Shown: positions 117-63,675 of the stretch, one piece after another
Layout of the letters: the number at the start of each line of letters is the position of its first letter
Numbering within the stretch: the first letter of the stretch is position 1
Assembly: GCA_002104905.1 (NCBI GenBank)
Contig: MCFE01000315.1
Coordinates: forward strand, 33,259 to 97,258
DNA: 64,000 nt
Direction of reading: 5' to 3'
From: Basidiobolus meristosporus CBS 931.73
Taxonomy: Eukaryota; Fungi; Basidiobolomycota
Notes under the pieces: model-generated
Seen by the model: the letters and a program-made list of their open reading frames with translations, nothing else
The model's database searches: none
What the model was told of the DNA's origin: nothing
Position numbers and translations under genes: made by a program

Positions 117-848
117 AGACGTGTTCCATTGGATAGTGCCACATTGGGCCATGAGTGCCAAATGATGCCATAGTGTGCCAGGGAGGCTAAGTGAGCCTTT
201 ACTTGGCCACAGAGTGTGAAACATAGATCTGCATCTTCATGCAAAGCAGCCCCTGTGTTTCACCAATTGTGTTAGAGAAAATTCATTTTTTGACCTTTTT
301 TTTAGGTCAATGTTGTGCAGGATGTGTAGGAGCACAAAAGAATTGAAAATATGCATTTGGTACTCAATACCCATTGCACTCTGAATCTAGCTCCTGTGGC
401 TTGTAACATGTCACAACAATGCATGGCACTATCTTGATCCACTAGTACTATCTGGCACTTTAAGTGCTTTATATAGATCTTACTTTAGGGCTAATAATTA
501 AATATAGTGCCAGATGGTACCAGTGGACCAAGATAGCGCCATTCATTGTTGTGACATGTTACAAGCCACAGGAGCTAGATTCAGAGTGCCATGGGTATTG
601 AGTACCTGATGCATGTCCTCAGTTCTTCTGTGCTCTTACACATCCTGCATAGCATTGATCCACAAAAAACATCAAAAAATGGATTTTCTCCTGCATCATA
701 GGGGAAACACAGGGGCTGCTTTGCATGAAGATGCAGATCCATGTTTCACACTCTGTGGCCAAGTATAGGCTCACTTGGCCTCTCTGGCACACTATGGCAT
801 CATTTGGCACTCATGGCTCAATGTGGCACTATCCAACAGAACAAGTCT
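117..848. mobile_element. Foldback (long inverted-arm) MITE, copy 1, 732 bp, TSD ATC
   Basis: Ends AGAC(G)TGTTCC...GAACAAGTCT; ~340-bp inverted arms around a ~45-bp spacer; ATC at 114-116 and 849-851; the empty site restores the gypsy reading frame. Confidence 0.95.
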
Positions 849-6646: not shown

Positions 6647-7358
6647 AGACTTGTTCTGTTGGATAGTGCCAAAAGATGCCATAGTGTGCCAGGGAGGCCA
6701 AATACACATATACTTGGCTACAAAGTGTGAAACATAAATCAGCATCTTCATGCAAATCACCCCCTATGTTTCACCCATAGTGTTGGAGAAAATCCATTTT
6801 TTGACCTTTTTTTTAGGTCAATGTTGTGCGGGATGTGTTAGAGCATAGAAGAACCAAAGACATGCATCAGGTACTCAATACCCATGGCACTCTGAATCTA
6901 ACTCCTGTGGCTTGTAACATGTCACAAAAATGCATGGCACTATCTTGGTCCACTGGTGCTATCTGTCACTATATTCAATCATTAGCCCTAAAGTAAGATC
7001 TATTCAAAGCGCTTATAGTGCTAGATAGTACCAGTGGACCAAGATAGTGCCATGCATTTTTGTGACATGTTACAAGCCACAGGAGTTAGATTTAGAGTGC
7101 CATGGGTATTGAGAACCTGATGCATGTCTTCAGTTCTTCTGTGCTCTTACACATCCTGCACAACATTGACCTAAAAAAATGTCAAAAACTGGATTTTTTC
7201 CAGCGTCATAGGTGAAACACAGGGGCTGCTTTGGACAAAGATGCATAGCTATGTCTCACACTCTGTGGCCAAGTATAGGTTCATTTGGCCTCCCTGGCAC
7301 ACTATGGCATCATTTGGCACTCATGGCTCAATGTGGCACTATCCAATGGAACAAGTCT
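6647..7358. mobile_element. Foldback MITE, copy 2, 712 bp
   Basis: AGACTTGTTC...GGAACAAGTCT; long inverted arms; flanks ACT / AAT (one mismatch). Confidence 0.93.
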
Positions 7359-7489: not shown

Positions 7490-8740
7490 TTATCAGCAAA
7501 TCAAGGAATTTCTTACATCACTCAAAGTTCCTGCTGATATTCTCATACATCAATGCACAAATTTTAAAAAGAAGGCTTTGAAGTTTATACTGCATGACTG
7601 CACACTTTTCAGAAGAAGAAAACATGGAGTTCCTTGATGGTATATACAAAACAAGCATGATCAAGAGTAGATCATTCCAGAATTGCATGTATCTGAATCA
7701 GGAGGTCATAAGGGAATTACATCAACATATACAAAAATCTCCTTACGGTATATTGGCCTACACTATACACCAACACAAAAGAATATGTGAAATCATGTAT
7801 TCCATGTCAAAGAAGAGACAACCAAAAGATGAATGAACCATTTCACAGTATTTACACATCTTATGCTTGGCAAATGGCACATGTAGAAATTATACAATTA
7901 CCAAAGGCAACAGCAGGGAATAAGTGTGTAGTGGACTGTTGTGATAGCTTTACTGGTTGGATAGAGGCTAGAATGCTGAAGCAAGCCAATGCAAAAGCAG
8001 TAGCAAGATTTCTTAAAGAAGATGTGTATCTCAGATATTGTTCAGTTGGTACCCTTATTGCAGAAAATGTAGAATGTGGATCTTATGAAATACAAAAACA
8101 AGCAATGAAGCATAGAACCAAGCTTGTACATACTACACCATACAACCTGCAAGCAAATTCACCAGTTGAATGTGGCCATTCCGCTTTTGCAAACACATTA
8201 GCAAATCTTAGCTATGAAGAACCCAACAAGTGGGCAAATAACTTTCATGCAGCAATTTGGGCTGATAGAGTTACGGTTAAAAGAAGTACAGGGTATAAAC
8301 CATTTCTTTTAATATATGGGCATGAAGCTGTTTTGCCAATAGACACTTCTTTTGAGAATTGGTGTACCCTCCCATGGAAAGCAACCATGACAACATCAGA
8401 GCTATTGCTAGCAAGAGTATAGCAGATCCAACAAGCACACACTCTGCAAAAGAATGCAATAGAAAACCTGAAGAAATCCAGAATGGCTGGCAAGGTGTAC
8501 TTTAACACCCAAAAATGCCTAAGAAAAACATTGCTAGAAGTGGGTGAATTGATACTACTTAACAGCACCAAGAGCCAAAGAAACAAGGCACCCAAGCTGG
8601 AAATGCAATGGTAAGGTCCCTACAAGATCATACATGCAAACAAAAATGGATCTTACAAACTAGCTGTACTTGACAGTACACCATTTACACTGGCCCAGCC
8701 TGGAAACAGACTGAAGAAGTTCCATATCAGATTAATAGTG
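7490..8740 (+). pseudogene. pol: Gypsy A integrase (degenerate)
   Basis: ORF 7787-8422: WQMAHVEI, DSFTGWIEAR, HTTPYNLQANSPVECGH, WADRVTVKRSTGYKPF; C-terminal GPYKI...GNRLKKF. Confidence 0.9.
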
Positions 8741-10501
8741 AGTGCATTATTTCTCAAAGTTAGGGGAGGCTTGTGGTAATGAAAAGTATTTCATTACTGC
8801 TATATCTCAAAATCAATATTGCACTCATTTCTTTATTTTGCTTTTTGCTATTGTAACACATAGTTGAAAGATCAAGAATTTACAATTTCAAAAGACAAAT
8901 AATCCAGACCCTGATAAGCAATCTATCCATGAATATTATGACCTACAGAACATGCAGTGGCCAACAAATGTTTCAAATTACAGCTCATTTGAAGCAGTAC
9001 TTAATGAGTTATGACCAAAAGAGTCCAACTATTGTATGTACTAGGTCTCTATTGCTAGCATTACTATGGTAACTTTGATTGCCTGTAACTTTTGAAACAG
9101 CATGACAAATCACATGAAACTTCCACAGATGCTGCGCTAATGTCTGAACTACGCCACTGCAAAAATTTAGCTTTGTACCACATGTATTGCTTGCGCATTG
9201 CCCAAATATTTTGATCCTTCAGAAATATCATTTATATGACTTCCCCAGCTGAAAAACCAAGGAGAGACTCTCTTCCCAGAGCCTCCACACAACAATTACA
9301 AGCTTAAAGGTTATGAGACTTCCCCTGCATCACTTGCACTGTTGAGTATTCTGACATTGATTGGTACTACATCAATAGAGAGACTGAAAAGCTCACAAGA
9401 GCCCAATCTAAGTTCTACAAGAAACTACCACTTTGCTGTCGGAAAAGTCCCCTCTAAGAAACCCCTTTACTTGGAAGACACCCCTTGAGTCTAAAGGCCC
9501 ATTCAGAGACTCCTTTGAGAAGCCCCTTTCTTTAAAGAAGCCCCTTTAGGCACCCCTTTAGTATAAAGTCCACATTAGAGACAACTACCAGAAGCCCCTT
9601 TGCACTCAAGACACTCCTTTAGGTCTAAATAACCGTTTAGAGACTTCTATAACACACCTCTTTAGGTGAAAGGGGAGCTCAGAATTTCCATATCAGGAAA
9701 TATTTGCTCAGAAAGGAAAGTAACTTCCAAATAAGGAAAAGCCACTATGAAGTTAATAGACTTGTTCCATTGTACCGTGCCAGGGCGTGCGGCGCAATCC
9801 GCGGTTGCAAAGAACAATCGGGCGCAATATTATAGCTACCAGAAGGCAGGATTGTTCTTGGATGATTTTGCACTATGCGGGACAATCTCGCACACTATGG
9901 CACAATCTGACACAATGAGGTTGGCGCGGATGATTGCGCCCACTTGTAATGTTTGCATCACGTGCGCAATTGGATACCGCTATAATGGCAGGTAAAACCC
10001 GGTATTTGGATATGTTTCTTTAATGTAAATGGAAATAAATGTGTATCACACTATAAACTACACTGATACTTACCATTTTGGTTACCCTCACTCCAATTGG
10101 ACGGTATCTCAGTGGTTAATTGGTCCAAAAGTATCCTGAAACTGGCAGCCCCCAATTGGCTCATTGACTACTGAAAAAGCTACTTGATTTGCCATTAAAT
10201 ATCCCATTTTGCCCATTGAGCAAGTAAATCCCTGATCCTAGTGATTGGACAAGGTGTCATAGCTAGCACTCAAGCGATTGTGTAGGTACAAAACAGATCC
10301 AATAGCTGCACTGGTAGTACAGATGACGTATGTATATGCAGGGTGTTTATTTATAGGGGTTCTGTCTCAAATGTGAGACAACCTTGATATTACTTATATC
10401 AAAAATTTGATGATCACTGATTTGCGATGGCTCCATTCGGATTGCCAAAAAAAAAGGGTTGTCGGGATCATTACAAATGTGAGCGATTCAAAGCGATCGC
10501 A

Positions 10502-11751
10502 TCATCTTCTCCTGGGTTTTTTTCTCACAGAAATTACTACTGAAGCATTTGGTAGTGACTCACTTTGCACACCTATACTACTTCCTGGCTGACTATCATC
10601 TTGGCTACTTGTGTATTTGTAGTCAGTATTTTGCCTCCTAGTTGATGAGTGCAATGCTGCAGCTTGGCCGCGCCGAATCGCTCCAACTGAACCAACTGAA
10701 CTGGCCTGTAGTGCCACGCGCTGATGCGTTCTTTTACTTGCCAAGGGCTCCGGTGGTTGAGGCACTTCATGTTGGTCATCATCAGTCAGTTCACCAGAAG
10801 TAACTCGCTGATGGTCAGGCGAGACGGCACGCGCAGGCGCGCCTTGACGCGTTGAGATGGCCCTTGGCTGAGTTTGATGTGATGCCGCATGTTGACGCGA
10901 CTCGGTCCGCTCCAATGGACTTGTGTCTAAATGACCAGTTTGGTGAGTTCTTGTAGTTTTGCTCTGAAGCGCGTGCGTTGACCCAACGCGGGTTGACTCA
11001 ATGCACGTTGACTTGACGTGGGGCGTTCTGGTAAAGGGTGTTGGCGTACTCTGGACTGATGTGCGCCGGCGCGCTGTGGTTGCAAGAGATGGTAGGGAAT
11101 CCAGCAAGGCGTGCTGGCGCAATCTGGACGATGTTGCTTGCGGTCTGTATTCTTCCTCCTGAGGCTCACCATCTGATTCCTCAAGGTATTCACTTACCCT
11201 CTGTCTGATACTTTGGAGCTGTTGCCTGGATGAGTCCTGTGTATATTGCTCTCAGAAGCCACTTAGCTCTACTAATATATCACGTAGTACATTAGTCATT
11301 TGAGGCAAAATTTCTTTGGTTCCCAAAGTTGAGGCACAAACGGCCGCATCCGGCCCGTACTGTGCAAATTGCGCGCAAAATTGTTCCCGCGCGGCTTCTT
11401 TGTCAAATCCCTCACTCTCAGCTCATTCTTGATTTCAATACTTGTCTTGTTATATATCTTTTTACATACATTGGCTGGCATCTTTATGTAGAACTCATGC
11501 CACAGCTTTCTACTCAAATTCTTCCATCTTTGTCAACTCTCTGAGGTATCTAGTTCTGCTAGATTAATCAGTAGTGCCCAAATATCTGTATGAAGGCTCA
11601 TCATAGACACTTGTGCCATACTAAAATCATTTGGCGAGAAATCAAACGGATCTGACATCGACTTTTCTGGTCCGGACCACGCTTGTGAGCTGGGGGATGG
11701 GTTTTGTCTGGGTTGTACTAAAGATGAGTTGAGGCTTGGTATGGGGACCAT
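10502..11751 (-). pseudogene. PHIS ORF2 (~415-420 aa reconstructed): putative Myb/SANT-MADF-like N-terminus, S/T/R/Q-rich tail, C-terminal NLS-like RKKPRRR
   Basis: Four copies can be merged into one frame. W-S-G-P-E-K and IW...RWKNL spacing resembles Myb/MADF (weak, by eye). This copy has two stops (one clearly CGA->TGA) and a small deletion. Confidence 0.65.
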
Positions 11752-12110
11752 AGCAACAGATTTGGATACTTATACAGCAGTATATTGGCATCAACCTGGT
11801 CTTATATGAAATATATATGAAAACTAAAGTGATTGTTGAATTTTCCATACATTATGCATGATGCATCTTGGATTGTGTTGACACGGATCAGATCACATCA
11901 ATCGCAGATTTCCTATTTGATTATAGACCTAGGATTAAACCATCAATAAAAGTACCAAGGCATTGTTTGCGGATGATTTTTGCGACATAATGATGGGATA
12001 CATGGCAATTGATGGAGATTTAACCAAAATGTGTTAAAAATCAGATAAATAACGCAGATCACGCCGAATCGATTCAAACCACCTCCATACAATCATCCAT
12101 CAATTTTAAT

Positions 12111-12995
12111 ATGACTTACTCATCTGAATGGTCTTTTCTCATCAATACCATCACTACCACTGGATTTCCTTTTGACACACTGGAGGAGATCTATACCAAG
12201 TACTGTGGACCATCAACCCCAATCTACTCAAGGAGATCCCTTGTTAAGCTTCTCTGCTATTACAAGAACTATTGCCCCACAAGGTTTCATCCCACCATCC
12301 ATGGCAACAAAAGTCCTAGAAGCTTTCATTCCCAGCTGACAGCAATGGAGAACCACCTTGTAGAGGGTATGATTGACTTAGAGCAAGCTTGGAATACTAG
12401 GTTCAGAAGCTCCAATAGACTTCCATATCCTAGAGTGTTCAGCAACAGGTTCTATATAAGGAGTATTTTGGATACCTTCCCAGTGAGGATTAACAGACCT
12501 TCTAGAGGGCAGAGGCACTTTTATTCTGGCAAGTACAAGGCACACTGTGTGAAGTTTCAAGCACTGTCTGACATTGAGGGTAACATCATCTGGTTTAGTG
12601 GGCCATTTGCTGGAAGTATGCATGACAAAGCACTCTGGGTAGAGAATCATCCTGAATTCAGTAGAGGGGAGAAATGTATGGCAGACTTAGCCCATACAGG
12701 AGAGGATTGTCAGAGATTAGGATGTATTACAGCTTATAGGAAGCCAAGGAATGGTGTGCTTAGCAGGAAGCAGAAGCTCTACAATGAGATATTTAATCAT
12801 TTCAGAGTAAGGGTAGAGCACACATTTGGATATCTGAAGAGATTCAGCATATTGGCAGGTTAATACAGAGGAAAGTCATATATAGGAGAAAACAGCAGAA
12901 TAGGTAAAATAGTTAAGATACTTATTAATGCACAGTATGTTCATACAAGAAGACATCCACTGAGAGAAATGTGTCTGGAGCATTATGAAGAGTAA
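12111..12995 (+). pseudogene. Harbinger-type DDE transposase (294 aa with one internal TAA at 12861-12863)
   Basis: ILDTFP (D1), YSGKYKAHCVKFQ, FSGPFAGSMHD, CMADLA(H/Y) (D2), YNEIFNHFRVRVEHTFG (E): DDE_Tnp_4-like. The frame continues past the TAA to YEE*. Confidence 0.92.
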
Positions 12996-13417
12996 ATAAA
13001 GCAAGGAAAGCACTATTCTGAGCAACACAAGTAAGATTGAGTAAAATTACCAGTAACTGTATCATACCACTGGCATCATGGTAGAAATTATAGTGCCAGA
13101 TAGTGCCGTAGGGTGCCAGATTGATCAGGCACTATAAACAGGCTGGCACTATGTGGCACTATCCAACGGAACAAGTCTAATAAGCCCATTAGTGAGCAGA
13201 ATGTCAGAACACTGCTGTAGAAGTGAGAAACACTGCCTATAGTATATTTTAAGCCTAAAATTGAGGATATTAGTGAAAGTTTTATCTTCTATTGGTATAT
13301 CAAACTCCCAATAAACTATTTTGGTTTTAGCATACTGGAAGCTGTTGGATATTGCTGATTAGCCTCCACATTGTAGAACAAGCCCCAAACAAATCATAAT
13401 ACAACACAACAGATTTG

Positions 13418-15927
13418 GTTACTGGTAATTTTACTCAATCTTACTTATGTTGTTCAGAGTAATGATTTCCTTGCTTTATTTATTCTTCATAATGCTCAAG
13501 ACACATTTCTCTCAGTGGATGTCTTCTTGTACAAATGCACTGTGCATCGATAAGTATCTTAACTATTTTACCTATTCTGCTGTTTTAGCCTATATATGAC
13601 TTTCCTCTGTATTAACCTGCCAATATGCTGAGTCTTGTTAGATATCCAATTTGTATGCTGTACCCTCACTCTTATATGATTAAATATCTGATTGTAGAGC
13701 TTCTGCCTACTGCTAAGCACACCATTCCTTGGCTTCCTATAAGATATAATACATCTTGATCTCTGACAATCCTCTCCTATATAAGCCAAGTCTGCCATAC
13801 ATTTCTCCCTTCCACCAAACTCTGGATGATTCTCTACCCAGAGTGCTTTGACATGCCTATTTCCAGCAAATGGCCCACTAATCCAGATGATGTTACCCTC
13901 AATGTCAGACAGTGCCTGAAACTTCACACAATGTGCCTTGTACTTGCAGAATAAAGGTGCCTCTGCCCTCTAGATGGTCAGTCAATCCTGACTGGGAAGG
14001 TATCCAAAATACTCCTTATATGGAACTTGTTGCTGAACACTCTGGGATATAGATGTCTATTGCAGCTTCTGAACCTAGTACTCCAAGCTTGTGCCTAGTC
14101 ATTCATACCCTCTGCAAGGTGATTCTCCATTGCTTTCAGCTGGGAATGAAAGCTTCTAGGACTTTTGTTACCATGGATGGTGGGATGAAACCTTATGGGG
14201 CAATAGTTTATGTAATAGTAGACAAGCTTAACAAGGGATCTCTCAGAGTAGATTGGGGTGGATGGTCCACAGTGTCTTGATATAGATCTCCACTAACGCA
14301 TCCAGATGAAATCCAGTGGTAGTGATGGGATTGATGAGAAAAGACCATTCAGATGAGTAGGTCATATTAAAATTGATAGATGACTGGGCTGAGGTGATTG
14401 GATTCAACTTGGCACAATCTGCTTTATTTTTCTGATTTTACATGCATCATGATTAAATCTCCATCAATTGCCAGGTATCCCATCATTATGTTGTAAAAGT
14501 CATCCTCAAGCAATGACTTGGTATTTATATTGATGCTTTACTCACAAGTCTATAATCAAATAGGAAATTAGCAATTGTTGTGATCTGGTCCATGTCAATG
14601 CAATCCAAGATGCATCATGCTTAATATATGGAAAATTCAACAATCACATTAGTTTTCATATAAATATCATATAAAACCAGGTTGATGCCAAGACACTACT
14701 GTATAAGTATCCAAATCTGTTGCTATGGTCCCTATGCCAAGTCTCAACTCATCTTAAGTACAACCCAGACAAAATTCATCCCCCAGCTCACAAGCATAGT
14801 CTGGACCAGAAAAGCTGATGTTGGATACATACAAGTTCTTGCCAAATAGTTTCAACATTGTCCAAGTGTCTATGATGAGCCTTCATGCAGATATTTGGGC
14901 ACTACTCATGAATCTAGCAGAACTAGATACCTCAGAGAGTTTACAAAGATGGCAGAACCTGAGTAGAAAGCAGTGGCATGAGTTCTACATCAAGATTCCA
15001 GCAAATGTATGTAAGAAGATATATAAAAAGACAAGTATAGAAATCAAAATTGAGCTGAGAGAGAAGGGACTTGATGAGGAAGCTGCGCAGGAACAATTTG
15101 GCACGTGGTTTGTTCAGTATTGGCCAGACGCATCTGCTTGTGCCTCAACTTTAGGAACCAAAGTGGTTTTGAATGATTTTTGCCTCAAGTGACTAATATA
15201 CTATGTGATATATTAGCAGGGATAAGTGGATTCCAGTAGCAATATACACAGGACTCATCCAGGCAACAGTTCCAAAGTATCAGACACAGGGTAAGTAAAT
15301 ACCTTGAGGAGTCAGAAGGCAAGCTTCAAGAAGAAGAATACAGACTGCAAGCAACAGCATTGAGATTGTGCCAGTACACCTTGCTGGATTCCTTACCATT
15401 CCTTGCAACTTTGGCATGCCAGTACACATTAGTTCAAGCTCTGCCAACACCCGTCACAAGAGTGTCCTGCATTGAGTCAATGCATGTTGGGTCAACCTGC
15501 ACACTTTGGAGCAATACCACCAGAACTTGCCAAGCTGCTCATTGAGACACAAGTTCATTGGAGCAGGCTGAGTTGTGTCAACAAGCAGCATCATATCAAA
15601 CTCAGCCAAGGGCCATGCAAGCTCATCAAGTTGTGTCTGCACATGCCGTGACACCTGACCATCAACAAGTTTCTTGTGGTGAACTGACTGATGATGACCC
15701 ACATGAAGTGCCTCCACTACCAGAGCCTTTAGCAAGTAAAAGAACATGTCAGCACATAGCACAGCCAGCCAGCTCAGTTGCATCATCCAGAGCAACTCAG
15801 CACAGCCAAGCTGCAGCATTGCACTCATCAACTAGGAGGCAAAATACTGACTACAAATACACAAGTAGTCCAGAGGATAGTCAACAAGATAGTAGTTTTG
15901 GTATGCAAAGTGAATCACTACCAAAAT
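13418..15927 (-). mobile_element. PHIS element copy 2, reversed, both ends missing
   Basis: Transposase remnant 13480-14365 (-) and ORF2 remnant 14725-15927 (+), colinear with the reverse complement of 9758-13178; CpGs decayed. Confidence 0.9.
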
Positions 15928-19196: not shown

Positions 19197-21273
19197 CACC
19201 ATGGGTATGCTAAGAAAGTATCTTAAGAATAGCAGCAACTATCACAGGCAGAAGAACAAGGGTGCCATAGCAAAAACCAGCAGCTTCCTCAAGAGCCTGT
19301 TACAAGCGGGGCCAAAAGCTCCAGACAAGTGTCAAAGAGACGTCAGGCAGCCCAAAGAGTGCCAATTAGGGACAAGCAGGCTGACATGGATGCACCAGCA
19401 CAACATTTATCAAGGAAAAAGCATGGTATCACTCAAGAAGCACTCAGTCAAAGTAGCAGTGAAGGACCTGGCAGTGATAAAAACCAGCCGCTTATACAGA
19501 AGCCTGTTACAACTACAGTTGAGAGCTCAAAACAGTTGGAAAAGGGAAAAATGTCTACCTAAGCCTGAGACAGGGAGGCATGCAAAAAAGACTACAGTTC
19601 ATACCAATCAAAGCTGTAAGCCCTGAACAGAGTGAATCCCATCATAGCCAAGAGGAAGTATCAACAAGAAAACAGCTGTTTTCACAAGAGTTGGAAGTGT
19701 AGCCAGTTTAGCAACACTCCAGCAAGGTAGATGAGTTTGCTGAAAAAGGCAATTTGTCTACTGCAGCCTCCATATCCTTTATTGTTGACAGAGTTGAGGT
19801 CCATCTGACAGACAAGGCTACAATGTCAATAGCTCACAAGACTATCACAATGCCTACAGTAGAGATTTGGAAAACTAATAGACTTGTTCCGTCAGATAGT
19901 GCCGTGGTGAGCTGCAAGTGCCAAATGATACCATAGTGTGCCAGGGAGGCCAAGTGAACCTATACATGGCCACAGAGTATGAAACATAGCTCTGCATCTT
20001 TGTCCAAAGCAGCCCCTGTGTCTCACCTATGATGCTGGAAAAAATCCAGTTTTTGACCTTTTTTTGTGGGCCAATGTTGTGCAGGATGAATAAGAGCACT
20101 AAAGGATTGAAGATATGCATCTGGTACCCAATACCCATGGCACTCTAAAACTAACTTCTCTGGCTTGTCACATGTCAAAAAAATGCATGGCACTATCTTG
20201 GTCCACTGGTACTATCTGGCACTATATTTATTTATTAGCCCTAGAGTAAGATCTAATCAAAGCGCTTATAGTGCCAGATAGTACCAGTGGACCAAGATAG
20301 TGCCATGCATTTTTTTGACATGTGACAAGCCAAAGAAGTTAGTTTTATAGTGCCATGGGTATTGGATACCTGATGCATGTCTTCATACATTTTGTGCTCT
20401 TACACATCCTGCACAACATTAGCCCACAAAAAAAACGTCAAAAAATGGATTTTTTCCAACAAAATGAATGATACACAGGGGTGGCTTTGTATAAAAATGC
20501 AGAGCTATGTTTCACACTCTGTGGCCAATTATAGATTCACTTGGCCTCCCTGGCACACTATGGCATCATTTGGCACTCATGGTTCAATGTGGCACTATCC
20601 AATAGAACAAGTCTAATAGGCACACCAACAGGTTACAGCACTTCCTCAAGAGGAGTGCCCAAGAGAATGCCCAGGAATATTGCAAGGATTTATAGCAAAG
20701 ACTGGCAGATAAGGTGCTAGACCATGCAGTGCCAGCTGAAGACCAGAATATGTGGGAACCAGTGAATGACCAGCCTAACCCTAAATTCCCAATTGCCTAC
20801 TTGACTGCAAGCTTAAGGTATCAGCATTATTACCTTCAGTGGGCACACTGACCACAGGGCCCTTTTTGATTGTAGCCCAGCTTGTAGCACTGGATGTCAA
20901 AGCAAACTGTTGTCCAACCATTCATCTGCTGCTGTCAACAGTGAGGTTTGGTTGAGAACCAAGCAAGTTTGATTTGTTTTTTGATAGCATATATATAGAA
21001 GTGAGTCAAACTACAGAGGAAATGTCATTACACATACATGTGTATGTGGTGCTACAACTTTATTTTTAATGCCCACCATGGTAGGCCACCATTGAAGCAT
21101 ACAAACATGTTGGTGCAATGTCTCAAATACAAGCTTGTCTTAAATTCACATAAGTATAAACAAAAAAGAATAGAACAGCATTAGATTGTTGAGTGTTAGA
21201 CTGTTTTTTGCCATGGACAAGCCTACTTTGGTTCAACACTATAAGAGAAGAGAAAAAAGACCATGTGGCTATC
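19197..21273. mobile_element. Two CACTA fragments joined in opposite orientation (19197-~20765 +; ~20770-21273 reversed)
   Basis: Match 5170-6170, and the reverse complement of 4460-4910, respectively. Confidence 0.8.
19880..20614. mobile_element. Foldback MITE, copy 3, 735 bp, TSD AAT
   Basis: AAT at 19877-19879 and 20615-20617; the empty site is visible in CACTA copy 1 at ~6017. Confidence 0.95.
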
Positions 21274-24200
21274 AGACTTGTAACATTGGGTGGTGCCTCA
21301 TTGGCCATGAGTGCCATATAGTGCCATAGTATGCCAGAGAGGCTAAATAAACTAATACTTGGCCTTACTGACACATTATGCCATTACTTTGCACTCATGG
21401 CTCAATGTAGCACTCCCACTTCTGCCATGATACCAGTGGTGGGATACGGTTACCTGTAATTTACTCAATCATATTTATGCTGCTCCGAACAGTTCTTTTC
21501 TTCCTCTATTTACTCTTAATAAAGCTCAGGACATATTTCTCTCACTGCACATCTTCTTATATGAATATACCATGCATTAATAAATATCTTAAATGCTTCA
21601 TCTAATCAGCTGCTTTCTACTGATATGAATTTCTTCTGAATTTACCAGCCAATACACTGAATCTATTCAGATATCTAAATGTATGCACTACTCTCACTCA
21701 GAGATGATTCTATATCTCATTGTAGGGCTTTACTTCCTGCTAAGCACACCATTCCTTGGCTTCCTATGGACTCTACTACATCCTAATTTCTGATAATCCT
21801 CACCTGTATAAGCTAAATTTGCCATACATTTCTCCTTCTACAGAGTTCTGGATGATACCATATCCAGAGTGCTTTGTCATGCCTATTTCCAGTAAATGGC
21901 CCACTAAACCAGATGATGTTACCCTCAATATCTGACAGTGCTTGAAACTTAACACAGTGTGCCTTATACTTGCCAGAATTAAGTGCATCTGCTCTCTATG
22001 AGGTCTATTAATCCCACTACAAATGCATCCAAGATACTCCTAATGTGGAACCTGTTGTAGAGCACTATGGGTTATGGAAGTCTAATGGTGCATCTGAGCC
22101 TAATATTCCAAGCTTGCTCTAAGTCATTCATACCTCTTACAAGGTGGTTCTTCATTGCTGTCATCTGGGAATCAGAGTTTCTGGGACTTTAGTTGCCCCG
22201 TATGGTGGGATGCAACATTGTTGGGCAATTTGGTGCAATCAGATTAATTATTTGATTTTCCATGCATTGTGATGAACTTTCCATCATTGACATATATCCC
22301 ATCATTTTGTCACAAGAATCATGTCCAAACAATAACTTGGCTATTTTATTGATGATGCACTCACAAGTCTGTAATCAGATAACAAATCAGCAATTGTAGT
22401 GATCTGATCCATGTCAATGCAATCAAAGATGCATCATACATAACAAATGGAACATTTAGAAATTGCGCTAGCTTTCATATATTTCTCATATAAGATCAGG
22501 TTGATGACAATCTACTACTTGATAGGTATCCAAATTCATCACTAAAGTCCCAAAACCAAGCCTCTGATCATCTTTAGTACAACCCAGACAAAATGCATCC
22601 CTCAGCCCACAAGCAAGGTCCATACTGTAAAAGCCAATGTTGGATTTGTTTAAGTTCTTGCCAAATAATTTTAGTGTGGCCCAAGTGTGTGTGATGAGCC
22701 TTAATACAGATATTTGAGTACTACTCACAATTCTGATAGAGCTGGATACCTCCAAGCATCAAAAGGTATGCAAGAACATGAGTAGTAGGCTGTGGCATGA
22801 GTTTCACATCAAGATGCCAGCAGATTTATGTAGGAAGCTATATAACAAGACAAGTATTGAAATCAACAATGAGCTTAGAGTATTATATTTTAGTAGTCCT
22901 AAGTGGCTTCCAGAGCTATGTACACAGGACTTGTCAATGCAACAGTTTCACTGTATCAGACAGAGGTTAAGTGAATACCTTGAGGAATCAGCTGGTGAGC
23001 TTCAAGAGGCAAAATACAGACTGCAAGCAACTGCATTAAGATCACACCAGCATGCATTGATGGTCACCTTACCATCCCCTGCAACACTGGTGTGCTGGTG
23101 TCTGTCAGTCCAATCTATGCAACACCCTTCATAAGAGTGCACTGTGTCAAGTCATTATGCATCCAATCAACACTCAAACTTCAGAGCAAAACTACTAGCA
23201 AATGACAAACTATACATTTGAACACAAGTACATAGGCATAGGCCAACTTGCATCTACACGCCACATCACATCAAACTTAGCTAAGGGCTATGCCAACACA
23301 TCAAGTTGTGCCTGCACCTTCCATTACACCTCACAATCAACAAGTTACCTCTAGTGAATTACCTGACAATGATCCACATGGAGTGCCTCCTTCACCAGGG
23401 CCTTTGGCAAGTAGAAGAACACATCTGCATATGGCACTTCAAGCTGGATCCAGTGTATTATCTGGAGCAAGCTCCAGCATTGCACTCATCAACTAGGAGG
23501 CAAAAAACTGACTACAAGCACACAAGTGGCCTAAATGGTAGTCAACAAGGAAGTAGTCCAGGTGTGCAAAGTAAATCACTCATAATGCTTCAGTAGTAAT
23601 CCCTGTGAGAAAAAAACCTAGGAGAAGATGATTCAATTGCATTGAATTGCTATTATCTGTAATAATCCCAACAATAATTTTTTTTTGCAATCCTAATTGA
23701 GCCATTGCAAATGAGTGATCATCAAATTTTTTATACAAGTTATATCAAGGTTGTCTCACACTTGGGAGAGAACCCCTACAAATGAATACCTTGCATATAT
23801 ATACATCATCTGTAATACCAGTGCAGCTATTGGATCCATTTTGCACCTACTTGATCACTTGCATGCTAGCTATGACACCATGCCCAATCATTAGGATCAG
23901 GGATTTGTTTGCTAAATGGGCAAAATGGGATATTTGATGGCAAATCAGGTAGGTTGTTTAGTAGTCAATGGGCCAATTGGGCCTGCCAGCTTCAGGACAC
24001 TTTTGAACCAATTAACCACTAACAAACTATCCAACTGGAGGGATGGTAACCAAACTGGTAAGTATCAGTGTACTTTATAGTGCAATATGCATTTATTTCC
24101 ATTTACATTAATGAAACATATCCAAGTACCAGATTTTACCTACCATAATTGAGGTATCTGATTGCACATGTGATGCAAACATTATAAGTTGGCGCAATCA

Positions 24201-41819: not shown

Positions 41820-44378
41820 GATGCCTTTCTGCAACTAAAGCTGAATGTATGGCAACTTACCCAGCAACTAATGAGGCTACTTGGCAACAGAAACTTTTGA
41901 ACAACTAAGGCTTAAATTAAGATGCACCTACATGTATGGACCTTGATAATAAGAGTTGTATTTCACTAGCTAGAAATCCCACTTATCATGCAAGAACTAA
42001 GCACACAGATATACAATACCATAATGTCAGGAAAGCTGTAGAAAATAACTCATCAGAGCTAGCATACTACCCAACTGACAAAAAGGTGGTGGATTGATTG
42101 ACAAAAACCCTAGCTAGACCACAATTTGAGAATCCTGGAGAGGAATTGGGCTTTAGAAATTATTCAGATTAGGGGGAGTGCTGAAGTATCAAACTATTTG
42201 ATATCATTCAGCTGCTAAAAGTTTACCTGACAAAATATGCACTACTGTTAGCCACTGTAGGATATACTCACAACCCAAGCTTTGCCACTTTATTCAGATC
42301 TACAACCCAGTGAGTAATCCCATCTAGTCAAGATCAAATTAATCCTTTTTCAAACATTGTAACCTAACCCTAAAATGGTTACAGAATGCTCCTAAATATT
42401 GGGAAACCCCCCTACTCAGTGTTACAATTGTAATGCTTCTACAAAGGTGTAAGTACAGTGCTACTCTATGAGTACACACCAGTTCAGCTATTATAACTAT
42501 TTCTTGATAGGCTCATTTTATCCAAATCACTGCTCAAATTGCAACATATACAGGCCAGGACCAGACAGCAAGCACCCTAGGTTTGTTAGCGGTGACAGTC
42601 CCTATCAAGTTCCTGTGTAAAAAATGCTCAAAGTTGGAATTGATAAGCAGAAACTGGCTCTTTCTAGGCTGTTATGAAGATACAAAAGGTGTTTATGATG
42701 TTAAGATTCAGAAGCTGAGCAAGAGCTGGGACAACATATTTGAGCAGAATTCAGATCAGAAAGTCACTGCAATCATTGCCCAGCTGCGTGATGATGCAAT
42801 CACCACTATTTAAGAAGATATGTACCTAATGCAGCCAGACACTGAGGAGCATTCTACCAGCTTCAGATCAGAGTAGATTAACCCAGTTAGAATATTTAGT
42901 GGAATAAGAAATGCCCCTGACTCTTAGTGGCAGATATCAATAACCAAGAAGGAGCTTATCTGGCCTTACGTGCTAAACCTCATATTCTGGAATAGGCAAT
43001 GCAAAGTCTAACTGCTACTATGTGGCAATAAGTCACACAGGAAGAGTATCAATTACAGATCAAAGTAAAAACTCGGGAATTGGTAGATTTATCAAATACA
43101 AAACCAAGATTGACTCAAATTGCACTTTTAATGAGCACAAAGGGAGATTGGTGGCAAAAGTCTATTCACTGATCCAGGGGCTGGACTCCAAGGAAACCTG
43201 AGCTCTGGGAGCCAAATTTAACTCTACTAGGACAGCTCGAGCCCTGGTAGCTGCGCACAGTGTAAATCTAAACCAAACAGACATCAAAACAGCCTTTCAA
43301 AGCAGGGATCTGCAAGAAAGTTTATATATGGAATAGCCAGAAGGTTTGACCAGCCCATAAGGTATTAATAAGTGGCTCAGACTTAGCAAATTGCTCTATG
43401 GCCCTTAGCAGGTACCTAGAGCATAGTGTAATAAGATTAGCACATTTATAGTGCCGGGTAAGTTCCATTGTAGCACTGCAGAACAAAGTGCAAATGTGCA
43501 AGAGCCTCAAAGGGCTTGATAATCCTGGCACTATATGTAGACATCATAATAATTGGGGTGGTTAATTCTGAGTGACAGATGCTCTACCACTGGGTATGTA
43601 TTTCCATATGTTAGCACAGCTATTGCTTGGATCTGTCACAAACAACCAAAAGGGCCCTCTCTACAACTGAGGCAGAGAATATAGCTGCTTGTCAAGCAAC
43701 TAAGGTGCTCAAAAGGCTACAAGAGTTATTATAAGATCTAGGTTTTCATTCAGATGAACTAACATGTATTTACCAGCAAAGAGACTTATTCTGTTGGATA
43801 GTGCCACATGGAGCCATGAGTGCCAAATGTTGCCATAGAGTGCTGGAGAGAACAAGTAAGCCTATACTGGGCCACATATTAATAGATGTATTGCTAGATC
43901 TCATGCTTACTTTTACCCTCCATGCTGGCAAAGTCCTTTTTCTGACCTTTCTTTGGGATCAATTGTGAGGATCATGTGTAAATGCACAATATATATCTAG
44001 GAGTCCTACTAATCATGCCACAACTCACAACATAGATATAAAGCACCACTTTTTGAGTAAAGCTGCAGAAAGTTACTTAGTAGATTCAGTGTACTGACTA
44101 AGTAACAAAAAAATGGCATATATACTTATAAAGCCACTGGCTAGGCCACAGTCTGAATGACTCAGCAAGATATTAGAATACAACACTATTTAGTTGAGGG
44201 GAGAGTTGGAATATCTGACTATGCAGTATTCTTCATTAGCTAAGAATTACTTAATAGCTCTAGACTAGGTGTTGTCACTATAGGACTAATTTACAGTTGC
44301 ACTTTTACCTTGCATCTTGTACTATCCCTGAAACTGTTACAGAATGCTCCTGAATGTTGAGAAACCCACCTTCATAGT
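41820..44378 (+). mobile_element. Scrambled copia fragments (+): RNase H, PPT and LTR 42179-42546; IN/RT/RH relics; second LTR from ~44204
   Basis: ARNPTYHARTKHTDIQYHNVR; PPT AGGGGGAG; LTR homology. Confidence 0.75.
43792..43990. mobile_element. Old truncated foldback-MITE arm
   Basis: AGACTTATTCTGTTGGATAGTGCCAC... decays into sequence still similar to the arm (CTGACCTTTCTTTGGGATCAAT). Confidence 0.6.
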
Positions 44379-45910
44379 AGACTTGCTCCATTGGATAATG
44401 CCACGTAGTGCCAGCCTGTTTATAGTGCCGGACTGATATGGCACTCTACGGCACTATCTGGCACTATGACTACTTGGCACTCATGGTTCACTGCAGAACT
44501 CTAATTTCTGCTGTGATATCAGTGGTATGATACAGTTACTGGTAATTTTATTCAATCTTACTAATGTTGCTCAGCATGGTGCTTTACTTGCTTTATTTAC
44601 TCTTCATACGGCTCCAAAAGCATTTCTCTTGGTGGATGTTTTCTTGTACAAATGTACTGTGCATTGATAAGTTTCTTAACTATTATACCCATTCTGCTGT
44701 TTTTACCTGTATATGACTTTCCTTTGTATTTACCTACTAATATGCTGAATCTCTTCAGATATCCAAATGTGTGCTCTACCTTCACTCTGAAATGATTAAA
44801 TATCTCATTGTAGAGCTTCTGCTTCCTGCTAAGCACACCATTCCTTGGCTTCCTATAAGCTGCAATACATCCTAATCTCTGACAATCCTCTCCTATATAC
44901 GCTAAGTCTGCCATACATTTCTCCCCTCTACTGAATTCAGGATGATTCTCTACCCAGAGTGCTTTGTCATGCATACTTCCAGCAAATGGCCCACTAAACC
45001 AGATGATTTTACCCTCAATATCAGATAGTGCTTGAAACTTCACACAGTGTGCCTTGTACTAGCCAGAATAAAAGTGCCTCTGCCCTCTAGAAGGTCTGTT
45101 AATCCTGACTGGGAAAGTATCCAAAATACTCCTGATATGGAACCTATCATTGAACACTCTGGGATATGGAAGTCTATTGGAGCTTCTGAACCTAGTATTC
45201 CAAGCTTGCTCTAAGTCATTCATACACTCTGCAGGCTGGTTCTCCATTGCTGTCAACTGGGAGTGAAAGCTTTTAGGACTTTTGTTGCCATCAATGGTGG
45301 GATGAAATCATTTAGGGCATTAGTTCTTGTAATAGCAGAGAAACTTAACAAGGGATCTCCTTAAGTAGATTGGGGTTGATGGTCCACAGTACTTGGAATA
45401 GATATCAAATCTATCCAAAGAAAATCCAGTGGTAGTTATGGGATTGATGAGAAAAGACCATTCACATGAGTAAGTCATATTAAAGTTGATGGATGATCAA
45501 GTGGAGGTGATTTGAATCAATTTTGCAAAATCTGCATTATTTATCTGATTTTCCACACATTATGATTAAATCTCCGTCAATTGCCATGTATCCCATCATT
45601 ATGTTGCAAGAACCATCCTCAATCAATGCCTTGGTATTTTTATTGATGTTTTACTCACAAGTCTATAATCAAATTGGAAATTTGCAATTGATGTGATCTG
45701 ATCTGTGTCAACACATCCAAGATGCACCATGCATAATATATGGAAGATTCAACAATCACATTAGTTCCAATATATATTTCATATAAGACCAGGTTGATGC
45801 CAATTTACTACTGTATCAGTATCCAAATCTGTTGCTATGGTCCCCATACCAAGTCTTAACTCATCTTTGTTATAACCCAGACAAAACCAATCCCCAGCTC
45901 ACAAGCACAG

Positions 45911-50900: not shown

Positions 50901-52551
50901 TGTTGAAACCTAAGAAGTGATTTGGTTATAAGGAACTTATCAAGAAATATTGTTAGTAGTTGAGCTGAAGTTTATTTACAAAGAAGCTCCTTATTTATAC
51001 CTTTGTAGAAGTAATTCAGCTGTAACACTAAGTAAGGAGGGTTTCTCAACACTAAGCAGCATCCTGTAACTGTTTCAGGGTTGGCACCTAATATTTAGTA
51101 AAAGTGTTAACTTCATATTAACCGTAGGGGAATAATCATAGCATTGTAGATCTGCAGAAAGTTGCAAAGTTAGGGCTGTAAGTTTGTCTTAAAGTGACCA
51201 AGATGAGTCTGCAAATGTTAAGTAAATTTTTGGTTGCTGAATGATACCAAATAGTCCAGTATTGCAAGACCCCCTCTCAACCAAATAAATTGTTAATCCT
51301 AATTCCTCTCTCAAATTCTGACATTGTGGCCTAGCTAAAAGTTTTGTCAATATATCTGTCACCATTCTGTTACTTTGGCAGCAAACTAACTCCACTAAGT
51401 TGTTTTCTGCAGCTTGCCTCACATAGTGGTATTGTATATCTTTGTGCTTAGTTCTGGCATGATAAGTGGGGTTCCTAGCTAATGAAAACAAACTTGATCA
51501 TCCTTGTAAGTACATGTTAGCCCATCCAAATTAAATTCTAGGTCTTTGAGTAGTTCTTTAGCCATATAGCCTCCTTGGTTGCTTGACAAGCAGCTGTATA
51601 TTCAGCTTTGGCTGTAGTTCAAGCCACAGTTGGTTATTACCTTCTTTTCCAAGTACTAGCTGTGACAGCATAAAGAATACCATACCCATTAGTAGAGCAT
51701 CTGTCAATCAGACCCCTACTCTAATCTGAATTTCTGAAACATCAATTCTTTGCCTATTAGCTGCCCCAGAGTGATCCAGTGCCAAGCTCATGATACCTGT
51801 AGATATCTGAAAATCTGCTGAACTGCCATATTCCAAGAAAATAGCTCAATTTTTTAAGATCTTTAATTTCAAACCTGCTGAAGAGATCAACTTTTGATGG
51901 TTTACATGCCTCCTGATAACTTGTAGCTATTATTAGGTTGATCACTTTGGTTGATCACTTATAGTTACTATTTGGTTGTCCACATATCCACTAGGATCAT
52001 CACACCATTTTCGAGCTGGTTCACATATATGCTATGATCTGCAATGCTATAATTGAACTCAGTCTCCTCTAGATATTTGTAAATCTGTTATACCATGCTC
52101 TGTGTGCTTGCTTAAGCCCATACAACAATTTTGGAATCTCAGAAAAGAATTAGGATTAAAAAAATACTTAGCTGAAGGGGAGTGTTGAAATACTGGACTA
52201 TTTAATATCTATCAGCAGCCACAAATTTACTTAGTAATTTGGGACTAGCCTTGTTCACTCTAAGACTAACTTACAGCCCCAACATTGACACTCTCTTCAG
52301 AACTACAATCTTATGATTATTCCCCTAGAGTCAAGAGCAAGTTAGCACTTTTACCAAACATCATATACTAACCCTGAAGCTGGTACAGAATGCACCTGGG
52401 TGTTGAGGAGCTCTCCTTTCTTAGTGTTACAGTTGGATTACTTCTACAAAGGTACAAAAACTGAGCTCCTTTATGAATAATGAACAGCTCAACTATTATT
52501 GCTATTTCTTGATAAGTTCCTTATGTCAAAATCTCTTCTTAAATTGCTACA
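50901..52551. mobile_element. Copia remnants: - strand LTR 50901-51269 with RNase H relic; + strand PPT and LTR 52183-52551
   Basis: ORF 51189-51491 ARNPTYHARTKHKDIQYHYVR; LTR homology. Confidence 0.8.
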
Positions 52552-57762: not shown

Positions 57763-60700
57763 GCCCTTTTCCAGAAGTCTGACTCAGCAACTAGAAAAAT
57801 TACTGTTGATGCCCCTATTGAGACTCATACAGTGAGTCCAAACAGCCCTGACAACAGAAAATACGAAGTAGACACCTTTGCTACTAAGAGACACCTTCCT
57901 GAAGAACCTGTCAAACCCATCCTTAGAAGACCACGATTTGAAGAGCCTGAGGTTATTATTGACAAGAGGCATAGAACACTGCCTACCCAAGACCCATTAC
58001 CTCACTTTCAGATGACCTCAAAGATAGCAGGCTACTCAAGCCCCCAATTGATTACTGAGAAACTACTGAAGCAGAACCTCACTTTGTCAGTTGGAGAAAT
58101 CATGAGTGTATCACCGTCTGTTAGGAAGACCTTTGATGAGCAGCTTAGAACAAGAAGACAAGCTGTTGAACATATGGACACCCATATAATCCAGACAAAC
58201 CATGAAGACCACAAAAAGGATGACAATGCTACCAAATACAAGACCTTTTACTCAGTTGCAACTGCTGTGGTGAAAGGGTACATATATGATGACCCTGTTG
58301 ACTGCCATATTGACAGTGGTTCAGAGATTTGTGTTATGCCGCTAGACTTCTGGAAGACACTTAGAAGCAAGGAGCTACTGCCTGTTGATAGAGATATTGG
58401 ATGGAACATGACTGATGCAAACTCAGGGTCTAGCCCACTCTATGGTGTAGTGCACAAGTTCCCTATTGAGGTACAAGGAATCAAGGTCTGGCTTCCCCTC
58501 TTTATCTGCCAGAAGGCAAACTTTGACCTTCTGTTAGGCAGACCATGGGAGACCAGTACTAAGGCTACAACTACCAACTATTCTGATGGGTCAGTGTGGT
58601 ACACTATACAAGGATCCAACCCAGGACTACAGTCAACATTCTGTGGGGTAACACCCAACAATAAGAGGACACATACCGCTTGCCAGAAGACACATCTTGT
58701 TATAGAAGAAGATGAGGAGCTTGACAGTATACACCCTAACAGTTGGAGCTGCTCATTAGGTATACAGGAGCAGTCAGCTATGGTTTGCACAAAATACAAG
58801 ACAGTGGAACAGAAGATTAGACCATCACTTACACCTTTAACTGATGGGTCTCGACCTGCTGATTACATCAGACCACCAGAAGGAACACCAGAAGATATAC
58901 GACTTACACCTGAGAGACTTAAGCAACTTATCATTGGTGATGGAAACCTAACACCGGAGGAGATCTTACTATTTGAAGAAACCCTGAAAAGGCTTGATAA
59001 GGTTTTCTCATATAACAACAAGGAGATGGGACTCTTAAAGACATCAGTTGAAAAACCTATCAAAATTCATACAGTGCCCCACACACCCTGGTCATTTAAA
59101 CCTTACCCACTGCCTAGAGGACTCCAAGCTGATGTGCATGACCTACTTAAGAAGAAGATTGAAGCTGGTATCCTAGAACCTTGCCATGGACCTTATGCTA
59201 ACAGATGGTTTGTGACCAAAAAGAAGAATGGGAAGCTCCGATTCATTCAAGACATGCAACCTGCAAATGCTGTCACTATCAGAGATGCCGCAATACCTCC
59301 GTCTATTGATGACTTTGCAGAAAGCTTTAGTGGTCACTCTATCTACTCAACATATGATCTCTACTCAGGATACGACCAGATTCCCCTAGATGAGACATCA
59401 AGAGATATGTTTGCACTCCAGACACCATTTGGACTGTTAAGAATGACAAGACTTAGCCAAGGGGCAACAAACTCCGTGGCTCAGTTCCAGAGGTGCATGG
59501 TAAATGTGCTCTACCAGTTTATACCTGAGAAACTTGCTGTCTTTGTTGATGACTTAGGCATCAAAGGACCAAAACTCCAGGACACAACTGAAGTTATGCC
59601 TGGAGTAAGAAAGTTTGTCTATGACCATATTTCAGACAATGATGTCATATTAGGAGCCATTGAAGAAGCTGGACTCACCATCAGTGGTGAGAAAAGCAGC
59701 TTTGGTGTATCAGAGATATCCATTGTTGGACAAAAATGCAACACATTTGGCCGTTCACCCGGAGACTCCAAGACACAAAAGATATGCAACTGGCCTACCC
59801 CCACAAATCTAACACAAGCTCGTGGCTTTGTGGCAGCTTGTGGGTTCTTTAGGATCTGGATCCCAAGATTTTCTGAGATAGCAGAACCAATCTACCGACT
59901 ACAGAGAAAGAATGCCCCATTTAACTGGGGAGAAGAGCAAGAAGAAGCCATGCAATTACTAAAAGAGGCCTTAGTATCTCCACCAGTTCTGAGACCTCTT
60001 GACTATCAGAACACTGAATGCCCACCTATCTTGACGGTGGATGCAAGCCCTGTAGGAGCTGGAGCACTACTTGGCCAAGATGATGAAGATGGTAACCGCT
60101 ATACCTGCAGATATGAGAGCTGCCTCTTCTCTCCTAGAGAACAAAGATACTCACAGATTAAGAGAGAGCTACTAGGAGTTGTGAAGATGCTGAGAAAGCT
60201 GAAGTCACAACTCTACATGACACATTTCATCCTGGAGACAGATGCTAAGCCACTTATAGGAATGATCAACAAGCCTGATCTACCTGATGATGCCACAAAT
60301 TGGTGGATGGCATGGCTGAAAATGTTTGACTTTGAGGTCAGACATATCCCTGGCAAGACAAATGTTGTGGCTGATGCACTCTCCAGGAAGGGACCACAGT
60401 TGTCTGAAGATATGGACCCTGACTTTGATGACATAATTGATGCAGAAATCCGACAACTACACGTGAAGAAGCCCAGCAACTCTACGTGGAACACCATTCA
60501 AGACTATCTGAGAACCTTAGAGAAGCCACCAGAAATGAGCCCACATGATTTCAGAAAGCTCAGGAAGAAGGCCCATCATTTCTACATAAAAGACGGCCTC
60601 CTCTTCAAACGAGTAAAGCCTGGACAGACACCAAGAAGAGTTATAGTTGAGCTCCAAGAACAACTGACTATTATGTCAAGCCTTCATGAAGGAAGACCCG

Positions 60701-61755
60701 GTGGTCATAGAGGCAGAGATGCCACTTACAATGTTGTTTCCAGTAGATACTACTGGGAGCATATGTATCATGATGTCCAACACTTTGTTGAATCTTGTGA
60801 CATTTGCCAAAGAAGGTCAACCAAGAGATATGAGGAGCCACTCCATCCAACCTACACACCTTGTCTATGGCAGAAGGTTGGCATTGACCTGGTCCACATG
60901 CCAACTGCTGGAACCAAGAAGTACCTTGTTGTTGCCAGAGATGATCTGAGTGGGTGGGTAGAAGCTCGAGCCCTACCCAATAACAAAAGCCACACCATAT
61001 GGAGATTTATTCTTGAAGATATAATATGCAGATTTGGCTGCATCAGCCAGTTTGTTGCTGACCGAGGAGAAATGACCTCAAATTTGATCCAGGAACTCTG
61101 CTCACAATACAAGATACATATTGCTTTCACTACCGCTTATCACCCACAGGCCAATGGAATGGTTGAAAGAGGCCATGGCCCGCTAGTTAACTCCCTGGTC
61201 AAGAGCTGCAACAACATGACACTACAGTGGCCTACACAGCTTCATCTAGCACTCTGGGCCAGATAGAATCACTACAAAAGTGCAGCACAAGGTCTATCTC
61301 CCATTCAAATTGCTTTACGGACATGATTGCGTTCTTCCCATAGAGCTTGACTCAATATCCTGGAACATGCTAGAGTGGAGAACTACAATGAGTACAGAAA
61401 GAACTACTGACTACACGCATCAAACAGCTTGATCACCATGAACTTGATATTACCCAAGCAGCTGCTAAACTCAAAGAGACAAGACTTCAGAACAGGGAAC
61501 CATTTGACAAGTCACATAGCCTTAGACCAAAGCCATTACTGGCAAGGAGATCCAGTACTGCTCTATGATTCCACTTTAGACAAGCAGTGGAGTCGCAAAT
61601 TTGACAATAAGTGGTCTGGCCCATATATTGTCTCTAAGGTGATTGGAAATGGAAGCTACTACCTGTCTGAACTTGATGGAACACCGCTAAGAGCACCTGT
61701 GGCAGGAAACCGACTTAAGCTATTCAAGCACCGGAATTTCGCACATCACATTTAG
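57763..61755 (+). CDS. pol: Pol (PR-RT-RNase H-IN); open to 61266, with a frameshifted C-terminus to 61755
   Basis: HIDSGSE; DLYSGYDQ...FVDDLG; TVDASPVGAG, ETDAKP; H..H...C..C; GIDLVH, VADRGE, GMVERGH; WSGPY...GNRLKLF. Confidence 0.93.
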
Positions 61756-62942: not shown

Positions 62943-63675
62943 AGACTTGTTCCGTTGGATAGTGCCACATTGAGCCATGAGTACCAAATGATGCCATAGT
63001 GTGCCAGAGAGGCCAATATAGCCTCCACCTGGCCACAGAGTGTGAAACATAGCTCTGCATCCTCATGCAAAGCAGCCCCTGTGTTTCACCCATTGTGTTG
63101 GAGAAAATCCATTTTTTGACCTTTTTTTTGGATCAATATTGTGCAGGATGTATTAGAGCACCAGCAGATTGAAGATATGCATCTGGTACTCAATACCCTT
63201 GGCACTCTGAATCTAGCTCCTGTAGCTTGTATCATGTCACAAAAATGAATGGCACTATCTTGGTCCACTGGTACTATCTGGCACTATATTTAAATATTAG
63301 CCCTAAAGTAAGATCTATACAAAGCACTTATAGTGCCAGATAGTACCAGTGGACCAAGATAGTGCCATTCATTTTTGTGACATGATACAAGCTACAGGAG
63401 CTAGATTCAGAGTGCCATGGGTATTGAGTACCAGATGCATATTGTCAGTTCTACTGTGCTCTTACACATCCTGAGCTACATTGATCCACAAAAAAAGGTC
63501 AAAAAATGGATTTTCTCCTGTGCAATGGGTGAAATACAGGGGCTGCTTTACATGAAGATGCAGAGCTATGTTTCACACTCTGTGGCCAAGTATAGGCTCA
63601 CTTGACCTCTCTGGCACACTATGGCATCATTTGGCACTCATGGCTCAATGTGGGACTATCCAACAGAACAAGTCT
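62943..63675. mobile_element. Foldback MITE, copy 4, 733 bp, TSD TAT
   Basis: TAT at 62940-62942 and 63676-63678; AGACTTGTTCC...GAACAAGTCT. Confidence 0.95.

Follow-up and report, generated by a model that had tools for sequence, protein, structure and literature searches.

The foldback element and its relatives in the window

The window, i.e., the entire stretch of 64 kb analyzed here, contains a non-coding foldback MITE of the hairpin type in four full copies, termed C1 to C4. The element is approximately 733 bp long (712-735 bp across the four copies) and consists of two arms of about 345 nt (346 nt as detected at 117-848) that enclose an asymmetric loop of 42 nt (40 nt between the arms as detected). 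It has the termini AGACTTGTTC...GAACAAGTCT and a 3-bp target duplication. When the copies were scanned for open reading frames, none longer than 62 aa was contained within the element. Perfect 3-bp target site duplications (TSDs) flank three of the four copies, while C2 is flanked by ACT and AAT. The copies and the two elements related to them are located as follows:

117-848, minus strand: MITE copy C1, arms at 117-461 and 504-848, loop at 462-503, TSD ATC/ATC
6647-7358, plus strand: MITE copy C2, arms at 6647-6972 (with a 19-nt deletion) and 7015-7358, loop at 6973-7014, flanking triplets ACT/AAT
9758-13178, plus strand: candidate autonomous PHIS (Pangu-like) transposon, TSD AAT/AAT, DDE_Tnp_4 ORF at 12111-12863
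19880-20614, plus strand: MITE copy C3, arms at 19880-20225 and 20268-20614, loop at 20226-20267, TSD AAT/AAT
43782-43996, plus strand: related element end, about 70% identical to MITE arm columns 1 to approximately 225
62943-63675, plus strand: MITE copy C4, arms at 62943-63287 and 63330-63675, loop at 63288-63329, TSD TAT/TAT

The loop of C1 is inverted on the plus strand relative to the loops of the other three copies. All copies were oriented by the loop (C1 as its reverse complement), and the four left arms (L) were aligned with the four reverse-complemented right arms (R). The resulting alignment comprises 347 columns, numbered from the tip (1) to the loop side (347). Columns 241-347 (107 columns) are referred to as inner and columns 1-240 as outer.

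Sequences matching the MITE with at least 80% identity were found in approximately 8,400-9,100 contig pieces per run in two public runs, figures that count pieces and are not on a copy-number scale. Some contigs from the public runs have the flanks of C3 joined without the MITE. The thousands of matching pieces together with the empty C3 site indicate that the MITE family is mobile and very abundant. As single-stranded DNA, C4 is predicted to fold into a single long hairpin (-357 kcal/mol, z = -59).

C1 is located inside a decayed Ty3/gypsy-type pol reading frame (1-116 and 849-1500 of the window). Elsewhere, at 57832-61266, an intact-looking pol ORF of 1144 aa with RT, RNase H and integrase is present, the nearest database relatives of which are only 47% identical. 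Within the left arm of C3, 10 changes are clustered in 13 nt (19904-19916, columns 25-37), and the 19-nt deletion in the left arm of C2 (6665) was found at the same subterminal spot, between two GTGCC motifs. This spot seems to be prone to rearrangement. A mini-foldback of 141 bp (21274-21414) is located about 660 bp downstream of C3; it is composed of arm columns 1-92 followed by inverted columns 19-76 and has approximately 80% identity to the MITE arms.

The ORF at 12111-12863 of the candidate transposon matched DDE_Tnp_4 with E = 2.9e-21; an exact-protein look-up of this transposase ORF gave no match. The right tip of the transposon (13155-13178) fits the 24-nt tip pattern of the MITE with no mismatches, as do the tips of C2R and C4L, and its left tip has three mismatches to the same pattern. 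The motifs ATAGTGCC and GGCACTAT are common to the right end of the transposon and the MITE. Next to the loop, a stretch of 43 columns is conserved between the MITE copies and contains two GGCACTATCT motifs, which are also present in the right end of the transposon. Both MITE arms would derive from this right end, and a Pangu-like PHIS transposase would mobilize the MITE in trans. The DDE_Tnp_4 transposase, the length of 3.4 kb of the candidate autonomous element, TIRs that begin with AG and a TSD of 3 bp (AAT in the autonomous copy) resemble the Pangu group of the PHIS superfamily (PMC4482050). With respect to the MITE copies, AAT of C3 and ACT/AAT of C2 fit the 5'-ANT-3' of Pangu, whereas ATC of C1 and TAT of C4 deviate from it. 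Apart from these two MITE TSDs, the sequence of the transposon at 9758-13178 fits the Pangu group, of which we regard it as a candidate member. Exact-pattern scans for further copies of the MITE gave no matches in collections of metagenomes and of viral and prokaryote genomes.

The homology between the MITE arms and the element end at 43782 stops at approximately column 225, and the inner 120 nt or so of each arm together with the loop are therefore specific to the MITE. The region 43782-44402 carries two tips of the family type that point the same way and are separated by about 600 bp (43782 and 44379), and the interior behind the first of these differs from the MITE. Behind the tip at 44379 lies a minus-strand DDE_Tnp_4 ORF (44597-45043). 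A 2-kb palindrome was found at 12202-14273, with three collinear arm blocks that are each 91% complementary. In this palindrome the PHIS element's right part with its DDE_Tnp_4 region is opposed by a partial copy in inverted orientation, in which ORF 13568-13927 also matches DDE_Tnp_4, and the right end of the PHIS element (13178) falls within the spacer. Right parts that face each other in this manner could give rise to a foldback MITE with two right ends. Another inverted repeat, located at 50901-52551, has arms of 427 nt that are 77% complementary and 797 nt apart. The PHIS tip motif is absent from this repeat, which may represent a different element with long TIRs.

Mirrored substitutions in the inner arms

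In the inner 107 columns, a minority base was present in exactly two arms at eight sites, and at all eight the two arms belonged to the same copy. The chance of this is 1/7 per site (binomial P = 1.7e-7). In the outer 240 columns, only 2 of 11 such doubletons were shared by the arms of one copy, which does not amount to arm pairing and differs from the inner columns (Fisher P = 7e-4). The identities gave the same picture. Within a copy the arms are 95.6% identical in the inner zone compared to 90.3% between copies, whereas within- and between-copy identities were practically the same in the outer columns (88.9 vs. 88.6% and 82.8 vs. 81.7%). Arm pairing in the outer region was also rejected on the basis of sites with a minority base in three arms, as 7 of 12 included a complete copy compared to 43% expected (P = 0.21).

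The mirrored private sites were unevenly distributed between copies. Five were found in C3 (20128/20365, 20150/20343, 20157/20336, 20169/20324, and 20178/20315), two in C4 (63224/63393 and 63232/63385) and one in C1 (417/548). C2 had none, and the mirrored A that it carries in column 276 is common to C2 and C3. The arms are identical over 65 nt adjoining the loop in C3 and over 88 nt in C4. C2 has an identical run of 63 nt that is broken near the loop, and C1 is without an exceptional run; its inner zones (355-461 and 504-610) contain nine arm mismatches in addition to the single mirrored site. In C4 the identity between the arms drops from 99% in the inner zone to about 87% outside it. A maximum likelihood tree of the inner region paired C3L with C3R (99% bootstrap) and C4L with C4R (97%), but left the arms of C1 and those of C2 unpaired. 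In the tree of the middle region the sole supported pair was C2R and C3L (83%), i.e., arms from different copies and from opposite sides of the loop, and the central and middle regions are consequently in conflict. The tree of the outer region had no supported grouping.

Parallel mutation of the two arms does not account for the mirrored sites. Even with generous private rates, only about 0.24 same-copy inner sites are expected compared to the eight observed (Poisson P = 2e-10). Of the eight mirrored changes, five are transversions, and changes of the CpG type are absent. Since, in addition, the arms contain only zero to two CpG per third, CpG hotspots were rejected together with parallel mutation. 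A base that is derived in both arms implies that sequence was passed from one arm to the other. Arm-to-arm copying in this element is therefore real. It is restricted to a central zone of approximately 100 nt beside the loop and is clear in only two copies. Only four copies were analyzed, and the five mirrored sites in C3 could have resulted from one event, which would bring the effective number of events down to maybe three or four. The mirrored zone corresponds approximately to the stretch of the arm for which the element end at 43782 has no homologous sequence.

The initial annotation had claimed that each copy carries private variants in both arms, and had quoted strings as examples. All of these were recovered in both arms of the copy named, but several are not private to it. 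The A of the copy 2 variant CTAACTCC is also present in both arms of C3, while ATGAATGG is also found in one arm of C1, and the same is true for TAGGTCAAT and for GGATCAAT. CACAACAATG differs from the other copies by a substitution and not by an indel. With no private mirrored site in C2 and nine inner mismatches in C1, the extension to every copy was overstated. The mirrored examples that had been listed further out have no statistical support, given the outer doubletons and identities above. The transfer of sequence between arms was borne out, with parallel mutation excluded, and the prediction that arms would group by copy in trees of the region near the loop held for C3 and C4 but not for C1 and C2.

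Mechanism and timing of the copying

In the mechanism that we propose, one arm would be copied onto the other in the central zone, approximately 45-100 nt from the 42-nt loop, so that a mutation arising in a single arm would become mirrored in both. This could be brought about by a polymerase switching template between the arms or by hairpin-templated repair synthesis, and the occasion could be either replication or the repair of a gap left by excision. A template switch would need homology between the arms on both sides of the center; it would replace a tract around the loop and could invert the loop. We consider template switching between the arms to be the most likely mechanism. In data from yeast, human and RNA genes it homogenizes the arms of inverted repeats and inverts spacers (PMC8604942, PMC5453318, PMC8794818, PMC13100816).

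Template switching would also account for an apparent flip of the loop. A haplotype block in columns 149-157 was found in exactly one arm each of C1, C2, and C3, and its column 156 also in one arm of C4. In C1 and C3 the block is located on the left side of the loop, and in C2 and, at the one site, in C4 it is on the right side. The numbers of same-side and cross-side differences in the middle region agree with the block in four of the six copy pairs and carry no signal in the other two. This suggests that the loop has been flipped relative to the outer arms, with the copies split 2:2 in orientation. The evidence in the sequence is essentially one marker block of 8 nt and the similarity between C2R and C3L.

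The initial annotation had the homogenization strongest next to the loop. Its confinement to the central part was confirmed, but the 43 columns nearest the loop contain none of the eight mirrored private sites compared to 8 of 16 unmirrored ones (Fisher P = 0.022). Columns 79 and 276 split the copies into C1 and C4 on one side and C2 and C3 on the other, with both arms agreeing within each copy. Each of these variants is thus mirrored in a pair of copies, and some of the mirrored variants, at the least, were already present in the element when it inserted. Mirrored and unmirrored private changes stood at 7:5 in C3 and C4 together compared to 1:11 in C1 and C2 (P = 0.027). The gap of 43 columns, the shared columns and the unequal ratios together favor copying in lineages that were still transposing, an argument on timing that rests on small counts (P of about 0.02-0.03). 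Most of the mirrored changes would accordingly have been made in propagating lineages and then have been inherited by the present copies when these inserted, while the unmirrored differences between arms would represent later decay at each locus. It looks as if the mirrored changes passed a filter for transposition competence, and as if the unmirrored ones are later neutral decay. Taken as a whole, the explanation that we prefer is a foldback MITE moved by a Pangu-like transposase, with copying between the central arms by template switching or hairpin repair that took place mostly before insertion, and we judge the chances of its being right in all these parts to be about even.

The alternative closest to this is that conversion between the arms continues in situ within every inserted copy, by hairpin or cruciform repair and independently of transposition, and so maintains a low steady-state level of central mismatch. 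We regard it as possible, but as clearly less probable than the explanation above. It agrees with the level of arm mismatch, which in three of the four copies is 3-4 times lower in the inner zone than outside it, and with the contrast between the inner zone of C4 and the rest of its arms. In C3, private divergence amounts to about 7% in each arm, inside the inner zone and outside it alike, as would fit a single locus that had decayed and had its inner part mirrored. The number of inner arm mismatches (1, 4, 5, and 9 among the copies) was not significantly heterogeneous (P = 0.075), and steady-state conversion in situ therefore stays a live rival. Against it are C1, where nine inner mismatches are found with one mirrored site, and the 43 nt beside the loop, in which conversion in situ should be most active and in which mirrored sites are absent but unmirrored changes frequent. 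The variants in columns 79 and 276 that two copies have in common also speak against the repeated conversion within each inserted copy that had initially been proposed. That all resting copies of the MITE undergo germline arm conversion driven by hairpins or cruciforms, with tracts of about 100 nt around the loop, is in our opinion rather doubtful. In the contigs of the public runs, the letters of C3 had a depth share of 2-4% at the mirrored sites, and mostly of 0.4-1.5%, with one of 4.3%, at the unmirrored private sites. Recurrent mutation in a family with thousands of copies could account for both sets.

Two further explanations were found to be improbable. Selection could have kept the central stem paired, either as a DNA hairpin required for transposition or as a hairpin RNA, and compensatory changes would then be favored. 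The central 225 nt are indeed the best-paired part of the element, the 43 nt beside the loop are conserved between copies, and there are matches to models of long miRNA precursors, although these are below threshold. A single mismatch will, however, hardly alter the stability of a stem of 345 bp, a mismatch of 12-17% is tolerated in the outer arms, and the conserved stretch is explained by the repeated binding-type motifs that it shares with the end of the transposon. For the central 225 nt of C4 (63197-63421) the Rfam scores were 111 bits for MIR2630 (gathering threshold 144) and 67 bits for MIR5512 (gathering threshold 139). Scores were equal on both strands, as for a generic hairpin, and a miRNA or other known RNA family was rejected. 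Selection for pairing is in our judgment a distant alternative, and still slightly less probable is an artefact of assembly or polishing, in which one arm of a copy would have been corrected with reads from its partner arm. Palindromic repeats in high copy number are hard to polish, and the contigs of the public runs may derive from the sample that was also used for the assembly. However, different variants are mirrored at the four loci, and unmirrored differences remain within the same zone. Mis-assignment of reads should moreover peak far from the loop and be least where reads span the asymmetric loop, which is the opposite of what was observed.

Comparison with known inverted repeats and implications

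The two terminal repeats of a long-TIR or foldback transposon, such as Galileo of Drosophila, Foldback-like elements and MuDR-class elements with TIR cycling, are closer to each other than to those of other copies or subfamilies, and this is also the case in the inner zone here. In Galileo, the TIRs are 98-100% alike within a copy while the subfamilies diverge, for which recombination and conversion have been proposed (PMC3573991), and exchange of TIRs has been described among Mutator elements (PMC10401008). The present element differs from these in being a non-coding PHIS MITE of 733 bp that is almost wholly palindrome, in having only about 100 nt beside the loop homogenized, and in that its outer 240 nt differ as much between its own arms as between copies.

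Template-switch (quasipalindrome) mutagenesis likewise produces mirrored changes of several bases, perfect stems near the loop and inversion of the spacer or loop (PMC8604942, PMC8794818, PMC5453318, PMC13100816). The arms described for it are about 4-20 nt with spacers of a few nucleotides, whereas the MITE has arms of 345 nt, a loop of 42 nt and apparent tracts of 60-100 nt.

The parallel to Y-chromosome palindromes that was drawn in the initial annotation is valid with respect to mechanism only. Intrachromosomal transfer between inverted arms keeps the arms of sex-chromosome palindromes similar. Those arms are, however, kilobases to megabases long, near-identical throughout, present at a single locus and gene-bearing. 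The MITE is a dispersed mobile element with arms of 345 nt, and only a short central zone is alike, with 63-88 nt identical in C2 to C4. Near-identity over the whole arm was not found, the arms being 87-90% identical within copies.

Altogether, the mirrored arms are statistically solid, but narrower in extent and less general than first described. They represent a further example of behavior already published for inverted repeats and add no new principle. Three regimes are found within one small element, i.e., independent decay of the outer arms, old arm-specific haplotypes in the middle and copying between arms in the center. As a practical caution, the identity between arms in foldback MITEs is no clock for the age of an insertion. 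With its thousands of copies, the family could be used to gauge how far arm-to-arm copying reaches from the tip of the hairpin, and whether it is tied to transposition. If it is true that resting copies convert their arms, the dispersed copies would be natural replicates from which the tract length, the rate and the loop flipping of palindrome repair could be determined.
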